From Podarcis liolepis (lineage: Eukaryota): a DNA stretch of 64,000 nucleotides. The position numbers and the translations under genes were made by a program. Shown here in pieces: positions 16,295-64,000 of the stretch. The notes beneath the pieces are model-generated. The model saw only the letters and a list, made by a program, of their open reading frames with translations. It was not told where the DNA came from and did no database searches. How positions within the stretch are numbered: position 1 is the first letter of the stretch; each line of letters begins with the position of its first letter. The DNA lies in NCBI GenBank assembly GCA_965112155.1, contig OZ218107.1, one strand, 5' to 3'.

Positions 16295-17050
16295 TTGCGT
16301 GGCGATTCCCGTCCCCTCCCACAGATGGAGTAAATAAAGACACCGGACACCAGAATTTAGGTTAATGGGCGAAAAATGGCCACAACTTTATTGATTACAG
16401 GTAAGAGTGGTATTGGCTTTAGGCATTGGTCCTAACAGACTATCCGGTCTAACCGGGAAGGGTTAAGCACCAACAGGGGGAGCCCCCGAGATGCACATCC
16501 CTAAGCGCTCCCCAAGGGGTTACCGCTCGGGAGCGCGCTTTAGGCCCTAGCCTCAGTAGGTTTCGGACGAGGCAACGCCCCCTGGAGTCCTTTAATGAAC
16601 TACCCTTCAAGATTTGGGGGAGGTGATGGCGTTCCTCTCCCCTGACTTCATTTGCATAACAATGCCCCTGTCAATGCCTACCGCCAAAACCGAGGAGTTG
16701 TGACGTTTTGTGACGAGGTAGGCGAAAAACCAAGTGACTTCTAAAATCCAGCCAATTAGCCAAATGGAAAAACTCCTACCAGGCCCCTTGCGGCGACCAG
16801 CCGAAGCCCATAGCAAAGTCCGAATGCAAACCTAGAGGGCGGGTGGGTGGGAAACTGTAGCTGCTGTAAGGAGAGAAAAGGGGTCAGCCAGGGCTGCCCC
16901 GACCTTAAATGCCCTTTAGTAACCCCGCCCCTACCGCCAGCCGATTGGCTGGCGCTGTGGGTAATGACTATTCATGAGAATGGGAATCCCTGAGTCCTGC
17001 GGGGCTGGCGCCAGCCCCGCAAGAATGTAAATGGGGGCGTGAGCCAGCAA
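16295..17050 (-). mobile_element. ~750-bp LTR-like repeat, copy A (possibly DIRS/Ngaro-derived)
   Basis: CpG-rich; on the minus strand: TTGC start, CCAAT (16944-48), GC box, ATTTAA, ENE-like motif, AATAAAGTTGTGGCC (16387-92), CACGCAA end; colinear homology with 45744-46753; no TSD seen. Confidence 0.8.
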
Positions 17051-17436
17051 CCCCCCCTCCTTAGGTCGGGAGTGGCTTTGTCCGTAAAGAAAACCCAACA
17101 CATGATCTCTTGCTCATATATAGGGGCTCTGCATGATGGAGGCATCTTCATGTATCATAATCATGGCAGAGGCCCTACTCAAAAGCAGGAGCTTGCTCAT
17201 TGCAGTTTCTTTACAGACAACTGTGCACAATGTGCTGTGGTTGGAGGAAGAAGAAGGCATCACATCAGGGAAAGGGCTGAAAGTGGGACCCCCATCCAAG
17301 AGGCAACAAAATTATGCCTTAGATGTGAATAATGTATAAATTGGATTTTCTCTCGGTTCTGTTTATAAACCAGTATGAATTCTGTTTCCTCCCTATTAAC
17401 ATTGCTTCATGAATTGATGATCCATTTCTGGTGCAG

Positions 17437-33802: not shown

Positions 33803-34360
33803 CTTCACTCCCCTTCAAAACAGTGACCAGCGTACATGCCCCCTTTCAATGCAGTGACCAGCGTACATGCCCCTTACAATGTAGCGGGTGGGCAGGAAGG
33901 TGACGTCGGGACGGTGCATGACTAACGCACGCACCGCCCCCATGAGACGTCACAGCCAGTACAGCGCCCGCAACAGTGGGGAGTGTCGGGGCGCACAATG
34001 CGCCTCCTCCCCTCGCTAGTATCCGCCCCGGAGCCGTGGCAAAGGTGTAAAAGAGCCACGTGTGGCTCCGGAGCCGCGGGTTGCAGACCCCTGGCCTAGG
34101 ACTTGCCAATCAGAAGGTCGGTGGTTCAAATCCCCATGACGGGCTGAGCTCCTTTTGCTTGGTCCCTGCTCCTGCCAACCTAGCAGTTCGAAAGCATGCC
34201 AGTGCGCTGCTCTGGTTCGCCAGAAGCGGCTTAGTCATGCTGGCCACATGACCCGGAAGCTGTACGCCGGCTCCCTCGGCCAATAAAGCGAGATGAGCGC
34301 CGCAACCCAGAGTCAGTCACGACTGGACCTAATGGTCAGGGGTCCCTTTACCTTTACCTT
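33537..34360 (+). mobile_element. Sauria SINE, split by a hAT MITE
   Basis: GGGTGGCGCTGTGGGTTAAACC head, (ACCTTT)n tail; 15-bp TSD TATCTGCCCCACCCC at 33522-36 and 34361-75. Confidence 0.92.
33583..34093. mobile_element. Non-autonomous hAT (Charlie-like) DNA transposon
   Basis: 15-bp perfect TIR CAGGGGTCTGCAACC; perfect 8-bp TSD GCCTAGGA (33575-82, 34094-101); internal (TG)n. Confidence 0.93.
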
Positions 34361-41495: not shown

Positions 41496-42591
41496 TTGCA
41501 ACCACGCGGGGAAATGAACAGCTGAGATACATAGACTGAGTGAACTGGGGCACATTTATATATTTATTCATTTAACCCAAAACCGATCTCCACGTGGAAA
41601 CCAAGGTGTGGGATCTAATTAATAGAATGTGGGTGAGCCAACCTGTGAATGGTTCCTCTGCTTTCTCTCTCAAGCATCACCCTCTCAAGTGAGTAAAAAG
41701 GCCTACCTGATCCATCCCATCTTTGGGGCCCCAGCAACTCTAGGCAGATGTTACTTGTTGGTACCGAAGGTGCTGCCTAACCAGGCCGCTGAGCCCCACA
41801 TTAGGACTACGCCACTTACCCTTAAAGATGCCTGATGTTGCTCGCCAAACCTAAACTGTGTCATAACTACCTGCACCTACCTTATAAAGGTAAAGGTAAA
41901 GGGACCCCTGACCATTAGATCCAGTCGCGGACGACTCTGGGGTCGCAGTGCTCATCTTGCTTTATTGGCCGAGGGAGCAGGCATACAGCTTCCGGGTCAT
42001 GTGGCCAGCATGACTAAGCTGCTTCTGGTGAACCAGAGCAGCGCATGGAAATGCCGTTTACATTCCTGCTGGAGTGGTACCTATTTATCTACTTGCACTT
42101 TGACGTGCTTTTGAACTGCTAGGTTGGCAGGAGCAGGGACCGAGCAATGGGAGCTCACCCTGTCATGGGGATTCGAACCACTGACCTTCTGATTGGCAAG
42201 CCCTAGGCTCTGTGGTTTAACCCACAGCGCCACCCATGTCCCTACCTTATAATGTGGTCAAGTAACCTCTTTAAAGACTATCCCTCCTCTAAGTTCCAGG
42301 CTACCACATCAGTACATAGCAGGCAAAACAAGCAGCCTAGCAAGGCCAATCCGCTCACGAGCAAAAAATCCACCCTCAGCGCCCCAAAAACAATTGGCCA
42401 ATGCCTGTACTGTCTATAGGGCGGGAGGATACGTAGCCAACAGAATGAAGAGGGTGCCAGAAGAATGAGGTGGGCTTAAATAGCCCCACCCACCCACTCC
42501 CAGTGTCAGTGTTGCATGCCTCTGCACATGGAAGTCACTTCTCAGGCCTCTACACTTCCTGAGCAGCTGCAGCAGCTACTTGCCGCCACAA
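41496..42591 (-). mobile_element. Degenerate member of the same LTR-like family, copy C, interrupted by a Sauria SINE
   Basis: Minus strand: GTTGTGGCGG start, TATTTAA, GGGTGGATTTTTT..ATTGGC..TTTTGCCTGC, AATAAA, TTGCAA end; ~730 bp once the SINE is removed. Confidence 0.5.
41888..42242 (-). mobile_element. Sauria SINE, full length
   Basis: Reverse complement of the other copies; TSD TACCTTATAA at 41878-87 and 42243-52. Confidence 0.93.
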
Positions 42592-44649: not shown

Positions 44650-45033
44650 CTGACACGGATGGTGCTGTAGTCTAAACCACTGAGCCTCTTGGGCTTGCTG
44701 ATCAGAAGGTCAGCGGTTTGAATCTGCATGATGGAGTGAGCTCCCATTGCTCTGTCCCAGCTCCTGCCAACCTAACAGTTTGAAAGCATGCCAGTGCAAG
44801 TAGATAAATAGGTACTGCTGCGACAGGAAGGTAAACAGAGTTTCCGTGCACTCTGGTTTCTGTCATGGTGTTCTGTTGCGCCAGAAGTGGCTTAGTCATG
44901 CTGGCCACATGACCTGGCAACTTGTCTGTGGACAAACACTGGCTCCCTTGGCCTGAAAGTGAGATGAGCGTCACAACCCCATAGTTGCCTTTCACTGGAC
45001 CTAACTGCCCAGGGGTCCTTTACCTTTTTTACC
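44650..45033 (+). mobile_element. Sauria SINE, more diverged subfamily
   Basis: GGTGCTGTAGTCTAAACCACTGAGCC...GCTCCTGCCAACCT...CCTTTACC. Confidence 0.88.
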
Positions 45034-45743
45034 TATTAGATTATAATGATGATAGCATTGATCTGGGTCAGTTGAACATAAATTTTCCTCTTGATCTTTA
45101 GAAGCCTTGGTTTGGTTCCCACAGTGGCAACCACCAGTTCAAGTGTTTTGATAATCATATTCAAGTTAGCCTTTGCCAACCTGTGTAGTTTTTTTGGACC
45201 ATTATTATTATTTATTAAATTTGTATACCACCCTGTACCTGCAGGTCTCAGTGCTCTGTTAGCTGGGGCTAATGGGAGTTGTGGTCCAGAAAACCTGGAG
45301 GGCACCATGTTAGCAAACACTGCTCCTAAGTACTTGAAAATGATAGTGGTTGTAAACTATAATGGTTGTTGAGGAAGAAACTACTCACTGGTCCTGCTGA
45401 TGAGGTGCTAGGCTCTAGGTATCAAGAGCAAAATTCATATAGCAGCTGGTGGGGCATTGTTGCTCACTTGGCTTCTCAGTGCCATGTGTTGCTGCCAGGT
45501 ACCAAGAGGGAAAGTGAGAGGAGCTGGAGGCAGTGGGGAGTTTGGTATGGTGTGGAATGGTTCAGCTGCTGCATCTGCACCACACCAAGCTCCTTGCTGC
45601 CTCTCTTCCACTCTCAGTACCCAGCAGCAGTGAATGCCATTAGAAAGCCAAGTGAGTAATACTGCCCTGCCCTGGCAGCCACTACCGAATATATATTTGA
45701 GAAGTCTTTTTTAAAATCTGCTCCACTTCCTAGTGGGGAGGAG

Positions 45744-46753
45744 TTGCGGTGGACTGCGTGGCCACCCACTACTCACCGGGATGCGGGGGACTTTGTCTCC
45801 CGTCGCCTGGGGATCCCGGCCACGTCAGAATCCGGCCAGCCAATCCGCTGGTCGGTGGCGTGTGGCCGGGACAGTTTAAACCGAGGAGCGAGCCAGAGGA
45901 CTTCCTCTTTGGCTCGCTTCCTCAATCACCCACCCTTCCTCCCTATTTCACAGGTTAGGCACTGGCCTTGCTATGGACCTCGGTTGGTCGCCTTGGTTGT
46001 TCGAGGGGCCTGGTAGGAATTTTTTCCACTTGGCAAATTGGCACTGTCCACTTGGTTTTCGCCTACCTCGTAGCAATTGTCACAACTTTGTTAGGGTTGC
46101 GGTTAGGCATTGTTTGACCTTGTGTGGGGGAGGGGAGGTGTGGCTATCACCTGCCCCTCCATGCTTAAGGGTATTCTGTTAAAGAAATCTGGGGGTGCTG
46201 ATCTTGTCTGAAGCCTGGCTGGGGGGCTAGGGCCTTGACATGACCCCAATGGGAACACCAGGGGGAGCTTGAGTTGGTTCGCATCGACAGGGCTCCTCCT
46301 ACCAGTGGTTTACCCTTACCAGACTTCCTGCACATGGGCAGGAGTCAGATATAGTTGGGTCCAATCAATGCCTAAGCCAATACTGCTCACATTCTGTAAT
46401 TCAATAAAGTTGTGGCCAAAATTTGCCCAATAACATAAACCTAATATCTGTGTCCTTGTGTGAGTTATTTCCAATGAAGAAGAGTTTGGATTTGATATCC
46501 CGCCTTTCACTCCCCTTCAGGAGTCTCAAAGCGGCTAACATTCTCCTTTCCCTTCCTCCCCCACAACAAACACTCTGTGAGGTGAGTGGGGCTGAGAGAC
46601 TTCACAGAAGTGTGACTGGCCCAAGGTCACCCAGCAGCTGCATGTGGAGGAGCGGAGACACGAACCCGGTTTCCCAGATTACGTGACTACCGCTCTTAAC
46701 CACTACACCACACTGGCTCTCTGAGGGGGTGGCTGCGGGGTCTCGACACGCAA
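45744..46753 (+). mobile_element. ~750-bp LTR-like repeat, copy B, interrupted near its 3' end by a SINE
   Basis: TTGCG start, CAGCCAATC, TTTAAA, ENE-like motif 46012-46067, AATAAAGTTGTGGCC 46403, CACGCAA end; shares motif order with copy A. Confidence 0.8.
46476..46720 (-). mobile_element. tRNA-derived CORE-type (MIR-like) SINE
   Basis: Minus strand: A-box TGGTGTAGTGG, B-box-like GGTTCGTGTC, GGGTGACCTTGGGCCAGTCAC core, (TCT)n tail. Confidence 0.8.
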
Positions 46754-47048: not shown

Positions 47049-48123
47049 GTAATGCTTTGTAAATAAATCTGTTTCAGGTATAATAATTAGTGTGGATTAC
47101 TGCAAAAAGTATGTATTAATTCACAACTTGTCAAAGTGATGGGCTCATTAAATTCAGGGGATTTAATTTAAAGCATATTAATCAGCTGAAGTAATTATCT
47201 CTCCAATTAAGGTTCTCCCTTTCCTAAAAATAATAATCTGATCTGTGTCAAAGTAATATGTTAATACAACTGAATTCTTGATTTGGAAATTAATATATTA
47301 CTACAGTATGTACTTTCCCCCATTCAAATCTCACTCAGATAAGCTAAAATTCAAATATCGTGTCATTTTAATATAACTCCTGAGTTGTTACACCTCTTCA
47401 TTAATCCCCAGGTATATTTATGTTACCTTAAAGGTTGTATAAAGTAAGCAACAGGAGATAGATTTAAATATCTTGTGGTAAGCATCATTTTACTAACAAA
47501 CATCCCGTCCAAAAGATGTAGCATTGTTCCCATGGGGTGGGGAAAGTTGGTTGTTCTCATTGGCCAGCTACAGGCTGATGTGCTGGAAAGCACATTGTTG
47601 CTTTTACAGTTTCTTCAAAGTTCCAGGCCAGTTTGTGATCAAGGCCAGATGACACACATTCTAAGGTATTCCAGTTATTGCCTGATGCCTTTTGATGGAA
47701 TGAGTTCAGCTGTGAGTCAGCAAGTATTGAATATGGAGGATGTGTAGGTGCTTGTACGAACCACCTCTCATATACTTGGCTATCATATGGAGAAACATTA
47801 TTGCTATGTTTGGCCACCTGAATACGCTGAAACAGAAAAATGCCAAGGCATTGCAATTATGAGAGATATCCATTATCTTCCTTTTCCACCACCATTTCCT
47901 CCTGGCAGGGCATGCTGAAGTAGAACAGCATGTAACTAAATATTTCCTTCTCCATTAATTACAAATCTGTAAGCAATTACTTTGTCAGGTGAAGCTGGAA
48001 AATAATTGCATTTGAAAGCTTTATTTGCAAGATCGGTATTAAAATGTAGCTAAGCATGAACAAAATAATTGGTTTTACTTTTCAGGACAAATAAAATAAT
48101 TATTGGCTTTTATCGTTGCAATC

Positions 48124-48466
48124 GGGACGCGGGTGGCGCTGTGGGTTAAACCACAGAGCCTAGGGCTTGCCGATCAGAAGGTTGGCGGTTCAAATCCCTG
48201 CGACGGGGTGAGCTCCCGTTGCTCGGTCCCTGCTCCTGCCAACCTAGCAGTTCGAAAGCACGTCAAAGTGCAAGTAGATAAATAGGTACCACTCCGGCGG
48301 GAAGGTAAACGCCGTTTCCGTGCGCTGCTCTGGTTTGCCAGAAGGGCTTAGTCATACTGGCCATATGACCCGGAAGCTCCCTTGGCCAGTAAAGAGAGAT
48401 GAGCGCCGCAACCCCAGAGTTGGTCACGACTGGACCTAATGGCCAGGGGTCCCTTTACCTTTACCT
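48124..48466 (+). mobile_element. Sauria SINE, young
   Basis: CpG-rich; 16-bp perfect TSD TTTTATCGTTGCAATC at 48108-23 and 48467-82. Confidence 0.95.
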
Positions 48467-52350: not shown

Positions 52351-55300
52351 GTAAGAGACAGCAGTTAGTCAGTGAAAAGTCTCCATATTTCCAATGTATT
52401 GAAAACGCTGCTTTGCTTATGGATAACAGCACTTTTAATTCCTGAATGGGAAGCGGCAGAATGGAGTGGTGTCATAGCTGTTCACATCACAAATCCTGCT
52501 TTTTAGCCTGGCCACATCAGAAGGTGGGAACGCTTTCGTCTTCTTGTTTTGCTGCAAAACCCCCCCAGGCTGGCATAGCTGAAAAGCCCAAACGGCTTTA
52601 GCTCCAACAGATTTAAAGTCACCAGTGCCTGCCTTGCCCCAAGACACCCTTTTTTGAGGAGAACAACCAGTAGCCAGGGGTGTACCTAGGGGTTGGCTAG
52701 GTTGGCCCCTGCCCAGGGGGATGCAAAAATTGTGCCTCTTAGCTCTGGCTCGGAGTGGCTGCTTGTGTGGTTCTCAAGCTCTTTCCTCCACTGCTCTGGG
52801 TGGCTGGGCAATACATGTAGGCTCCTCTGACAAGGGAGCAAGGGACAGAGGATGCCAATTCAGCTCCTTGTGAAGGGTGCAAGGGTGCCTAAGTAGGCTG
52901 GTGGTAGCTTCCTGCCTTGTTGGGTGCAGTAGAGTCCACTACAGAGTGCAGCTTAGTGGAGAGTCAGTTCCAGTTTATCCTAACCCCATCTAGTGCACTC
53001 ACAGGGAAAGCAGACCCCAGACTTTCTTACTTCCTTCCAGGATCTGCTGGAAGGAAGTAAGAAAGTTAGTTCATTTAAAAAGTTTCCTAAGCGACAGCTA
53101 CCGTGAATCTAGCCCCAAATCAATTTGGTGGCAGGGCAAATGTTTAATTAGGTTTTTAATTGGGAGGGGGGAGGCAGAAGGAAACATTGCATCTTATTCC
53201 TCTTCCCCTGACTACACTGGAAGTAAGAGGGGTCAATCCTGCTGTGTGCTGTCTCCCCAGAACCTTCTCTGTGGAAACATGCTGGCAATACAGATTCCTG
53301 CAACCAGCAGGATTGAGTCCTCCACTCACCAACTGGTGAGCAGATGACTCAATCCTGCTTAGGGTCTGCTTTCCCTGTGAGGGAATACATGGAATCTGTC
53401 TTCCTCTCCTTTTTTTCACTGACGGACCTCCCTCTGACAGCCCCAGGTTTCTCCAGGCAGCCTGATGTGGGGTGATCCAGGGCTGTTTCCACCTAACCCC
53501 GGTGAAGCCTGGATCCCACCCTTCCTGTTTAGTATAGGATGTAACAAATCCAGTGCACAGCCCTAGTATATGCGCATACTATAGCCTTATCTGGGTTATA
53601 CCAGATTGTATATCATGCATGTGTGATGATGTCATCATCTAATACCACCATTATGAGTCCTTTATAGGTCTGCCCTGAGGGGCACAGTGGTGTTCCATAT
53701 AGACTGCAGTTGTGCAGATCATGAGATCAATTAGTAAATTATTTGCATACTTGCTTTTAATTGCATAGATATATGTTTCTGTGATATCACAATTATATGT
53801 TGCTGTGGAAAGCTAATAATATATATAACTCATTTACTGGTTTCACAAACCATCAATAAATTGAACCCTATACTTGTTTCCTTTAAACTGCCTAGAAGCA
53901 ATTATAAGCTGAATTGAATAAGTGACTTGAAATGAAAATAATACAACACTTGAAATGGTAGTTTGTTGGAACTCATTAGAAGTTCCTTAACTCAAACTGA
54001 AATATAAATTTGGTTACGAACTGCAAGTTATTTTCATATAAACTATAAATCTTGGTAACACAACAATAAAACTGTTATGGCTGTGAAGAGATTAAATTAT
54101 AAGAGAAGTTTTTAAGCAGCTATTATGCTGCAATTTGCTTAATGACGACTGAGAGCATTTACAAATACAACCACGATCCGTGTTTACAATGATTACTGAA
54201 AAGGAAGAGCAGTTCCATTTGAGAGTACCAAATGCCTTTGACCTTATGTTTTGCAGAATACATCAAAGTAGCATTTGCAAAAATGTTACATAAATATACT
54301 TCTTCCTCATCAACATATTAAAGTGAATGATGTCAAACCAGATGCACAGTTCTTCATAGTTGAGAACAGGAACAGTTGCAGAGGTGGCCTTTTAGATTGG
54401 TCCCAAGCTTGTTGCTATGCTACAAGGTTACCAGAAAAGCTGCAAAAGTCAGCATGCTATACTTGTGAAATCCTGAACATAGAATCTTTGTTAAATCTAG
54501 TAGCATTATTAATGGAAAGCAAAGAGGGTGGTTTTTCATACTTCCATTTTTTTTAAATGAAACCCAAACCTTTTATTTTTTTTAAAAAAACCAATGTTTC
54601 CTAATTTCATTTTTTCTTCCCAAGCCCAGTGCAGCTGGGAGCAGCTGTTTATAGCATCCAATTATAACGGGACCTGTTTCTTTCTTTGTCTTGTTAACAC
54701 ACCTGCTCTCTCTGCCCCCATACCTATTAATCAAGCTGTTCTGGAACCCAGATGCCGTCTTGTTCACTGCCACAGCCAGCTTTAATGCAAGTTTAGGTCT
54801 CTAAGGGTTTCTGTCTGGTACTTGCCAAATGAAGGAACACCCTATAAATCTGCACACAATAGGGAAGGTGAGAGCTGTAGAAACCAGCTGTCCCCCAGTG
54901 AGGCAAATAATAATAATAATAAGTGGGAGAGAAGAGCTTTGAGCAAAGCAGGCAATTTTTTAAAAAGCAGGTTTTCCATGTGGGCGCTTGCATAAATTGT
55001 GGAGAACAGGAATGAAAAGGGCAAGAATAATACGTTTTAGCCAGTGCAATGATACACTTTTAAGATACAGGACTGAGACATTGTTTAGATTAGTAACTGT
55101 TGAATGGATTCTTTAAAAATGGTATTGTTGACCTGCAAGGGAGTAATAATTATCACAATTTACATATGTGTGTGTGTTTGTGTGTGTGGAGAGAGAGCCT
55201 TTAGCACAAACTGCTGAACTTATGGTTGGTGTCAGCCATGTTTTCGGATGAGTACTTTCACTCAGCAGCCACCCGCATTCGTAGAATCAGTTTGTTTTGC

Positions 55301-55375
55301 ATGGGAGCCCCTTGGTTGTGGGGCTGCATACAAAAGTATGATAAGTTTGTCAGTTCTTTGGTTAAGATATTGATA

Positions 55376-61865: not shown

Positions 61866-63840
61866 CAGTCACAGGCAAGGCTTATAGACGCTGAGTAACA
61901 GGGAGTTAGCTTGTAAAGGTAACCTTTTCACCTGTCAAAAATAGTGGCTGGTTATCTGACCCCAAGGTGAACTCCCCCTTTCCACATCTGATTGCCCCTG
62001 GGTTCCTTTTGAATTCACCAAAATATGCTTTTGAAATAGAGATACAGTCTTGTGTTCCTTAGAGAGGCAATGGCAAAGAGCCTCTTTACTGAGAGTTCCT
62101 GATTAGTTCTGAAAAAAAAGAAAAGAAAATAAATGTGCTTTAGAAGCAACTGAGTATAGGGAGGGTTGAAGCAGGAAAAGGGTTTACCTAAAGCAGTGAT
62201 GGGTAACCTCTGTCTCACAGGACAAATTTGGCCTGCCTGGCCTCCCCATTTGGACTGCCATTTGTTGGCGAGATATGTTCAGGGGGTGCAAGATTGGATA
62301 TCTGTATGCTAAGCTCTTGGTCCAGTAAATTTCAGGATCAGATCTTACCAATATATACAATCTTTGTTTGGAAATAATGTCCTTGGTCACCTGAACAGCT
62401 TTCTCAGAAGCGATGTGGAAAGCACATTAGGTGCATCATTCAAAGTGCATGCCGTGAAGCAAATGCAGAGTGCAGTTTGTATTAGACATTTAATGGAAAC
62501 ACAACCACTTCATTAACTTTGCAGTATTATTATGTGCTCTATATCATTATGTGATCCAAATAGGCTGTCAACAAGCATTACGTTTTAAGCAGTTTTAATT
62601 TAAATGTGACCTTTGCTTTAAATTTAGACAATGCCTTCAGGAATCCATATGATCACTCAGTGATAAAGCTAATTATTTCTTCATGTAAGCATCGAAATAT
62701 ACCTATATGTGGCAGAAATTTAAATCAGCCCTTTGCTCGTTGTCCCCATCCATCCCTGAATTAGCAATACCTTAAGTGTGACTCTGTTAGGAACATGATA
62801 TATTGTACCAATATACTAGTAAAAGCACCGCGCACCCAATAATTTTGGCCTGGAAAAACAATGTTGGCTATTTTTGTGGCAATAAAGCTATTGCATCTGA
62901 CTGTCTACTCAACCTGAAATCTTTAAGAAAGCATCTTTCTCCTGAGAATTCCATTACAGCAGTATAGTAAAAAATGGATGGGCTCCCTTCCCAGAGCACT
63001 GCAGCATTAAAAAAAAAAAAGAGTCTCTTCTCTCTTTCCCCTCTCTGTTGCATTATTTAGCTGTTAGAGTGGTTGCCTCGATGGTGGTGTGTATTTTGAG
63101 GAAAATTCCATTTTAAAAGCTGTGAATGCCTAACCCTTTTTATGCCAAGGCTGAGAATCACTGAAAAACGTATTATTTCTTAGGAAGAAATAAACCATAC
63201 TTGATCTTCTTGAAAGCTGTAGTTTGTAGGAAGCAATTTAGGCGCAAGTTCTATTTCTATGCATGTAACTAAAGGTCAAGCTAGATGTGTGCATTAGTTC
63301 CCAGCCCCTGTGTTTAGCCCAAATCAATAACAAGGAAGTAATGTTTTGTCCAGTTATGTTGGAAGAATTTCAGTTAGTTCAAGGATGCGGACAACGTACA
63401 TTAGATAGGTGCAGGCAGACACTTGCATTCCTGACCCATAGCCCTGGTAAATTGTCCAGGCACGTAGTACTGAAAGCTGGCCAAGTAATTTAGGCATTCA
63501 AGGCAGGGAATCACTTTGCCTAATGGTAGGGCCAGCTCTGTCTGCTTATCTAAAAAAAGCTTCACCTGTTTAAGTAATGCACGTTTGGCAGTTAGATGCA
63601 TGACAGCAAGGAGAATGTAAAAGCTGGAAGTGAGTAGTTTTGATTGCTTCAAGACACAGTCCTATGCATTCTTACCAAGAAGAACATGGATAGGCTTTGG
63701 CCACTCCAGCATAACCCTGTGAATGCTGGCTTAGAAGGAAGCCCTCTGCAATATTCAATGGCTGTTACTCCCAAGCAAGATTTCAGCCTCCCTCCCAGAT
63801 AAATAAGTTTAGAATTGCAGCCCACTAGGAAGCAAGTCTC

Positions 63841-64000
63841 GGGACGTGGGTGGCGCTGTGGGTTAAACCACAGAGCCTAGGACTTGCTGATCAGAAGGTC
63901 GGCGGTTTGAATCCCCGTGACGGGGTGAGCTCCCATTGCTCAGTCCCTGCTCCTGCCAACCTAGCAGTTCAAAAGCACGACAAAGTACAAGTAGATAAAT
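63841..64000 (+). mobile_element. Sauria SINE 5' half, cut by window edge
   Basis: GGGACGTGGGTGGCGCTGTGGGTTAAACCACAGAGCC head, near-identical to the 48124 copy. Confidence 0.92.

Follow-up and report, generated by a model that had tools for sequence, protein, structure and literature searches.

A conserved hairpin with a two-sided U-rich loop in an abundant squamate repeat: a candidate ENE upstream of a canonical poly(A) site

Two copies of a terminal-repeat-like unit lie in the 64,000-nucleotide stretch of Podarcis liolepis DNA analyzed here (the window), one on each strand, and each carries a hairpin with U tracts on both sides of an internal loop (Table 1). Within the window, blastn retrieved no third copy of this unit, and neither long reading frames nor gag or pol frames were found; pattern scans of metagenome contigs and viral contigs did not find further copies of the carrier either. 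Both units contain a promoter-like segment, in which the CCAAT box, the G/C-rich box (GGGGCGGGG in copy A) and a TATA-like element (TTTAAA in copy B, TTTAAG in copy A) are equally spaced, and a poly(A) site that is canonical in sequence, with UGUAA, AAUAAA, a CA around 20 nt further on and then a GU-rich element. The CCAAT, the TATA-like box and the AATAAA around 335 nt downstream of the hairpin that had been reported in the initial annotation could all be located, the AATAAA of copy B lying 336 nt past the hairpin.

Table 1. Coordinates of the carrier units, the hairpins, the long-range stem and neighbouring features in the window.
Feature	Position	Strand	Description
Carrier repeat unit, copy B	45720..46473	+	terminal-repeat-like; 5' edge set by a jump in genomic depth
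Promoter-like segment, copy B	45840..45880	+	CCAAT 45840-44, G/C-rich box, TTTAAA 45875-80; read from sequence, putative promoter
ENE-like hairpin, copy B	46012..46067	+	6-bp lower helix, AA/CG mismatches, U6/U4 internal loop, CCA/UGG, apical helix
Long-range stem, 5' strand, copy B	46079..46116	+	Ha 46079-87, Hb 46104-12; begins 12 nt past hairpin
Long-range stem, 3' strand, copy B	46362..46417	+	Hb 46366-74, Ha 46408-16; contains UGUAA, AAUAAA 46403-08
Predicted cleavage region, copy B	46425..46429	+	GCCCA; putative cleavage point
GU-rich downstream element, copy B	46447..46462	+	read from sequence
Carrier repeat unit, copy A	16326..17075	-	76% identical to copy B in global alignment
ENE-like hairpin, copy A	16717..16780	-	lower helix, A.G mismatch, G-C closing pair, U5/U5 loop, CCA/UGG, apical helix with 9 extra loop bases
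Long-range stem, 5' strand, copy A	16672..16704	-	Ha 16704-16696, extension 16691-16683, Hb 16680-16672
Long-range stem, 3' strand, copy A	16379..16428	-	Hb 16428-16420, extension 16417-16409, AAUAAA 16392-16387, Ha 16387-16379
Other repeat family copies	44650-45027, 34058-34355, 48122-48462, 63839-64000, 41892-42240

The carrier, a putative LTR, is an abundant repeat with a promoter-like segment and a poly(A) site. Both units end in CA; inspection of the two copies by eye found neither a shared TG start, and hence no TG..CA ends, nor a target-site duplication. Internal direct repeats, which were sought in the unit as marks of split repeats, were short and at chance level only. Five bases past the end of copy A begins a stretch (16321-16303, - strand, TGGGAGGGGACGGGAATCG) that resembles a primer-binding site, TGG...GGGAATCG. 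Since GGGAATCG is complementary to a common tRNA T-arm, the stretch may be a decayed primer-binding site; its fit to a tRNA 3' end is inexact.

The hairpin of copy B reads GGTAGG-AA-T6-CCA...TGG-T4-CG-CCTACC and that of copy A GGTAGG-AG-T5-CCA...TGG-T5-CG-CCTACC, and a letter-by-letter check confirmed both strings as originally given. When each hairpin was folded alone, the minimum-energy structure was indeed the one proposed, two helices around a two-sided U-rich loop: a 6-bp lower helix, the loop, CCA/UGG and an apical helix, with energies of -13.7 kcal/mol for copy B and -16.8 kcal/mol for copy A and pairing probabilities of about 1. Two 56-nt variants of the copy B hairpin carrying read-supported letters were folded as well. 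Compared with shuffled sequences, the z-scores were modest (-1.4 for copy B and -1.6 for copy A). A weak point of the initial description is the statement that different sequence forms the upper stem in the two copies, as the core UGGC/GYCA is the same in both, with one G-C changed to G-U, a fifth pair gained by a change on one side, and zero pairs altered on both sides. We also considered a coding explanation for the hairpin and rejected it, since indels make the reading frames differ between the copies and copy A meets a stop at GGTAGG; a protein search with a spurious 69-codon frame spanning the hairpin, aimed at gene calls on lizard contigs, returned no match.

How easily such a shape arises was gauged with a loose descriptor, which asked for four or more consecutive T on each side, three inner pairs with a G-C or C-G closure and, no more than two bases away, a perfect outer helix of 5 bp or longer. 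The descriptor matched three places in the window, the hairpins of copies A and B and positions 55236-55304, compared with 0.14 matches per window in dinucleotide shuffles, which corresponds to around one match per 450 kb by chance and hence to thousands per lizard genome. The third match (+ strand, T4/T4, 5-bp outer helix) lies outside the repeat family and illustrates the ease of chance origin. Given that the shape is this common, the weight of the motif must rest on its conservation within the family. It also has to be asked whether the hairpin has any function, or is a chance shape that happened to be present in the founder of an abundant repeat and now appears conserved through recent amplification and the 80% likeness cut-off of our alignments. 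The expected chance frequency, the modest z-scores and the finding that around one-third of the aligned genomic contigs are at least 95% like copy B are all in keeping with such an origin, which we nevertheless regard as quite improbable in view of the evidence from the family and from the two diverged units that is given below.

The architecture was compared with that of the ENE class using criteria drawn from reviews and the Evade paper (PMC7583470, PMC12501189). An ENE is a stem-loop with a U-rich internal loop beside G-C pairs that take A-minor contacts, and it acts on the poly(A) tail or on an encoded A tract; the more than 200 predicted members of the class include examples from plant, fungal and slime mould transposable elements and from 'stickleback fish retroviruses' (PMC7583470). 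Several predicted ENEs are embedded in the LTRs of transposable elements (PMC13541005). Single-domain ENEs comprise that of the KSHV PAN RNA and predictions in transposable elements, according to accounts of Tycowski et al. (2012, 2016) (PMC7583470, PMC13541005, PMC4378190). The lizard hairpins resemble these single-domain ENEs in having an internal loop with U tracts in either strand (U5/U5 in copy A), a C-G closure above the loop and, in copy A, a G-C pair below it. Unlike them, they have two extra positions between the U loop and the lower helix (A.G and G-C, or A.G and A.C), a 3' tract of only U4 in most relatives of copy B, and no covariance-model match. Judged by its letters, copy A would carry the sequence features of an ENE, save for the A.G mismatch below the closing pair.

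In order to assess conservation, one genomic contig run and three RNA runs were aligned to positions 45650-46475 at a likeness of at least 80%; parts of this region are contained in sequencing runs under five species labels. Summed genomic depth was 73 in the unique flank and rose to around 979,000 and 721,000 in the two hairpin bins, the highest values of the unit, compared with around 340,000 in the AATAAA block, at most around 348,000 in other conserved blocks and 5,800-130,000 in most of the remaining unit. The hairpin block is thus the most conserved part of the carrier repeat and is common to the order of 10^4 places, a figure that is a depth ratio and not a copy number. That the depth of a single unit varies by over 100-fold along its length, with peaks on the hairpin and AATAAA blocks, is difficult to reconcile with a functionless shape spread by amplification.

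Within the hairpin, GGTAGG/CCTACC, CCA/TGG and the T tracts varied in less than 10% of the genomic depth, with the exception of T-tract length. The differences that reached 10% concerned 5' T-tract length (T5 in 33%), the three apical positions 46045-47 and position 46051, the last of which is variable in the family and sits within an internal loop. Position 46047 is G in 98% of the depth, giving a GGC/GCC apical helix, so that the T of copy B is a private change. It is the apical loop that takes up insertions, of 9 nt in copy A and of GGG or TT in RNA contigs. Loss of the U tracts or flanking helices across copies had been named beforehand as an outcome that would speak against an ENE; the opposite was seen, as both are kept across thousands of genomic contigs. 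Positions 46019/46060, between the U loop and the lower helix, are G/C in copy A, T/T in one expressed relative and A/C in copy B and most of the depth. The G-C and U/U states fit an ENE, and the latter would yield a U7/U5 loop if the RNA is sense. The upper C-G pair is invariant, whereas the lower G-C closing pair, which ENE triplexes reportedly cannot form without (PMC12501189), is found in copy A, with the A.G mismatch beneath it, and is absent, next to a U4 3' tract, from copy B and around 96% of the depth aligned on copy B.

Covariation was not detected in the ENE helices, no pair being altered on both sides in the comparison of copies A and B, in the family depth or in RNAalifold. Since these helices are near-invariant, a sequence-specific partner fits them as well as a structure does. 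A search of positions 45600-46600 against Rfam 15 gave no match to the hairpin at E ≤ 10, the inclusion of ENE models in that set being unconfirmed; three sub-threshold matches elsewhere in the unit are all likely due to chance. The original ENE interpretation therefore keeps its architecture, its conserved U tracts and helices and its poly(A) site, as well as a lower closing pair in copy A, but it lacks covariation, an Rfam match and, in copy B and most of its relatives, that same closing pair, and it has to contend with the competing folds described below.

Copies A and B have diverged to the point that blastn aligns them in no more than two islands, one corresponding to the hairpin block (45968-46087) and one to the AATAAA block (46366-46439). 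In either copy, each island is complementary to the other, with the pairing segments nested. The duplex between them has an energy of -46.3 kcal/mol in copy B (z -7.3) and -36.4 kcal/mol in copy A (z -5.2), and none of 1000 shuffles was as good. Both the restriction of detectable likeness to these two blocks and the strength of their complementarity argue against a chance shape devoid of function. The stem consists of two helices. In the outer one, Ha, GUCACAACU pairs with AGUUGUGGC, whose strand overlaps the last A of AAUAAA and continues directly 3' of it; in the inner one, Hb, UAGGCAUUG pairs with CAAUGCCUA, and in copy A this helix is lengthened to 20 positions, 17 of them paired, by GGUUUUGGC with GCCAAUACC. 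Together the two nested helices close a domain of around 245 nt of variable bases, and the stem itself includes the poly(A) signal. Ha and Hb are identical in the two copies, the sole two-sided change being a pair of indels in Hb, where copy B has an extra U opposite one A fewer. In addition, consensus fragments of the unaligned read ends of relatives contain GUCACAAC, GGUAUUGG and UAGGCAUUG beside otherwise different sequence, which indicates that the paired segments are what the wider family retains.

Conservation of this kind could also act at the level of DNA. The block might be a cluster of NFI/CTF-type TTGGC/GCCAA half-sites and CCAAT boxes in both orientations, with the hairpin and the long-range complementarity as by-products of inverted motif copies. 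TTGGC/GCCAA occurs six and five times in the two units, around threefold more often than the 1.8 expected per 750 nt, the strands of Hb are one CCAATGCCTA motif in opposite orientations, and the sequence of the block is invariant rather than covarying, all of which would suit binding sites. However, the strands of Ha (GTCACAACT / AGTTGTGGC) are a further pair of motifs, unrelated to that of Hb and correctly nested outside it; within the transcribed part every TTGGC is 5' and every GCCAA 3', an arrangement that pairing requires and factor binding does not; the block lies downstream of the CCAAT/GC-box/TATA-like promoter; and the indels in Hb alter both strands together. We consider a DNA-level explanation unlikely on this evidence.

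A structure that acts in RNA may equally have a job other than clamping poly(A). The long-range stem could present a U-rich upstream element to the cleavage/polyadenylation machinery, or the whole could be an R-region fold for strand transfer, packaging, export or poly(A)-site control, as in some retroviruses with long structured R regions. Conservation and long-range complementarity serve such roles as well as they serve an ENE. If transcription starts around 25 nt past TTTAAA, the whole fold falls in an R-like region of around 520 nt present at both ends of the RNA; the AAUAAA of copy B is paired with UUUGUU in the predicted fold, which suggests control of the poly(A) site; and stems and an apical loop of invariant sequence are what would be expected of a protein-binding RNA. 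On the other hand, none of these roles requires a two-sided U loop closed by C-G, and we know of no described R-region or processing-type element of the hairpin's shape. A different RNA-level job is a candidate that we hold to be doubtful, although less so than sites in DNA.

Whether the hairpin is predicted to form depends on the sequence that is folded with it. When the region from the hairpin to the poly(A) site was folded, most of the pairs of Ha and Hb had probabilities of 0.9-1.0 in both copies. In full-length folds the hairpin itself reached 0.87-1.0 in copy A and 0-0.11 in copy B, in which forcing it costs 4.2 kcal/mol, and with flanks of 60-250 nt its probability was 0.01-0.09 in both copies. 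RNAalifold on copies A and B favoured two other hairpins, a small one of GGAA/UUCC around the 5' T tract and one pairing GCCUACC with GGUAGGC around 40 nt downstream. In the fold of copy A and the forced fold of copy B, a 4-bp helix is predicted between GGGC (46006-09), just 5' of the hairpin, and GCCC (46425-28), which belongs to the conserved GCCCA at the expected cleavage point around 20 nt after AAUAAA. This helix, suggestive only and resting on modelled folds, would create a three-way junction with the first residues of the tail at the foot of the hairpin.

Transcription was investigated in the RNA runs. One relative of the carrier dominates the stranded bulk RNA run, which comes from a related species, its unaligned read ends agreeing at 0.90-0.95 with a single consensus. 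This relative, which has T at both 46019 and 46060, covers 45986-46097 and 46366-46433, and its reads continue past 46417; 368 of its fragments against 27 have the first mate on the + strand, so that, assuming a standard dUTP library, its RNA would be antisense to the hairpin and the AATAAA. The remaining family reads were balanced by strand (18 versus 24), as were those of a single-cell run (30 versus 24). No pile-up of read starts or ends was seen at the predicted cleavage site in the three RNA runs aligned on 45650-46475. The proposal of a Pol II transcript thus keeps its promoter-like segment and its canonical poly(A) site, but the RNA reads show neither an excess of the sense strand nor 3' ends. 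Sense, site-terminated transcripts are not in evidence in the sampled RNA and may belong to other tissues or to the past; the absence of a sense-strand signal from the reads is also a point in favour of binding sites in DNA.

Taken as a whole, these results describe a real and conserved module of the 3' end that probably acts at the level of RNA. In the mechanism that we propose, it would be a module in the transcribed 3' part of the terminal repeat of a very abundant squamate retroelement, placed at the foot of a conserved long-range stem that bears the poly(A) signal on its 3' strand. Because of this stem, the start of the poly(A) tail would come to lie beside the hairpin despite being around 360 nt away in sequence. 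Adenosines of the tail would then insert between the two U tracts as U.A-U triples, with the invariant C-G pair closing above, and the clamp would slow deadenylation and 3' decay of the element's RNA. That a sense RNA is made, that it folds in this way and that it binds poly(A) are all steps that we infer. On balance we favour the broader proposition that the hairpin belongs to the 3' end as a structural module of the RNA. More tentatively, we put forward a poly(A) clamp of the ENE type, as a possible role that falls short of an even chance. More tentative again, and doubtful as it stands, is the complete picture of a squamate retroelement superfamily (~10^4 copies) with a working ENE that is delivered to the cleavage site by a long-range stem and a three-way junction.

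Among known systems, predicted LTR ENEs are similar in that a hairpin lies in the terminal repeat of a retroelement, upstream of a canonical poly(A) site. Proximity to the tail distinguishes the lizard hairpin from single-domain ENEs, as it is 336 nt from AAUAAA and would be near it only via the predicted long-range stem. The Copia93 element Evade of Arabidopsis has an ENE that works at a distance of hundreds of nucleotides from the tail, out of a spacer preceding the 3' LTR, and protects against deadenylation; its U tracts and the adjacent G-C pairs are each essential in vitro (PMC12501189). Both Evade and the lizard repeat therefore have an element of a retroelement (LTR-type) hundreds of nucleotides upstream of the tail. 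Evade, however, has four U tracts (a double domain) in that spacer, whereas the lizard hairpin lies inside the repeat, and the function of Evade has been shown experimentally, whereas ours is inferred.

Long terminal-repeat stems that include the poly(A) signal and join distant parts are a feature of retroviral R/U3 regions too, in the HTLV-1 Rex-responsive element and the HIV-1 poly(A) hairpin. The lizard stem is alike in both respects and differs in what it brings together, as its AAUAAA and cleavage site are already adjacent and it is the hairpin with the U loop that is brought to them.

The MALAT1/NEAT1 triple helix has a similar two-sided U-rich loop, which captures an A tract. In contrast to the lizard element with its ordinary AAUAAA, these RNAs rely on two parts immediately downstream, an A-rich tract encoded in the genome and a tRNA-like site for RNase P. 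MALAT1-like loci with multiplied copies have been reported in anole lizards (Zhang et al. 2017, cited in PMC10869381). We considered whether the present hairpin could be MALAT1-like and rejected this, as no A tract follows it and the Rfam scan of 45600-46600 gave no tRNA-like or mascRNA match.

ENEs shield the RNAs of viruses and plant retrotransposons, as well as long non-coding RNAs, against deadenylation, and for the mobile elements of animals they have only been predicted so far. If the proposed mechanism holds, the lizard repeat would be the first transposable element of an animal whose ENE is backed by more than prediction, and it would give the class a new, 'tethered' layout. The natural variants of the hairpin form a ready test set, with U5/U5 loops with the G-C closure, U6/U4 loops without it and U7/U5 loops, which could reveal the features that an ENE requires and whether closeness to the tail can be replaced by a long-range helix. 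Should the hairpin not be an ENE, the paired conserved islands would nonetheless mark out an unexplained RNA domain at the 3' end of a major repeat of squamates.

Other repeats were found around the carrier units. Directly abutting the 3' end of copy B is a SINE-like repeat (46474-46700, + strand, GAAGAGTTTGGATTTGATATCCCGCC...), which we take to be of a squamate tRNA-derived type. A further repeat family, 73-92% alike among its members, has at least five copies in the window, one of them just upstream of copy B.
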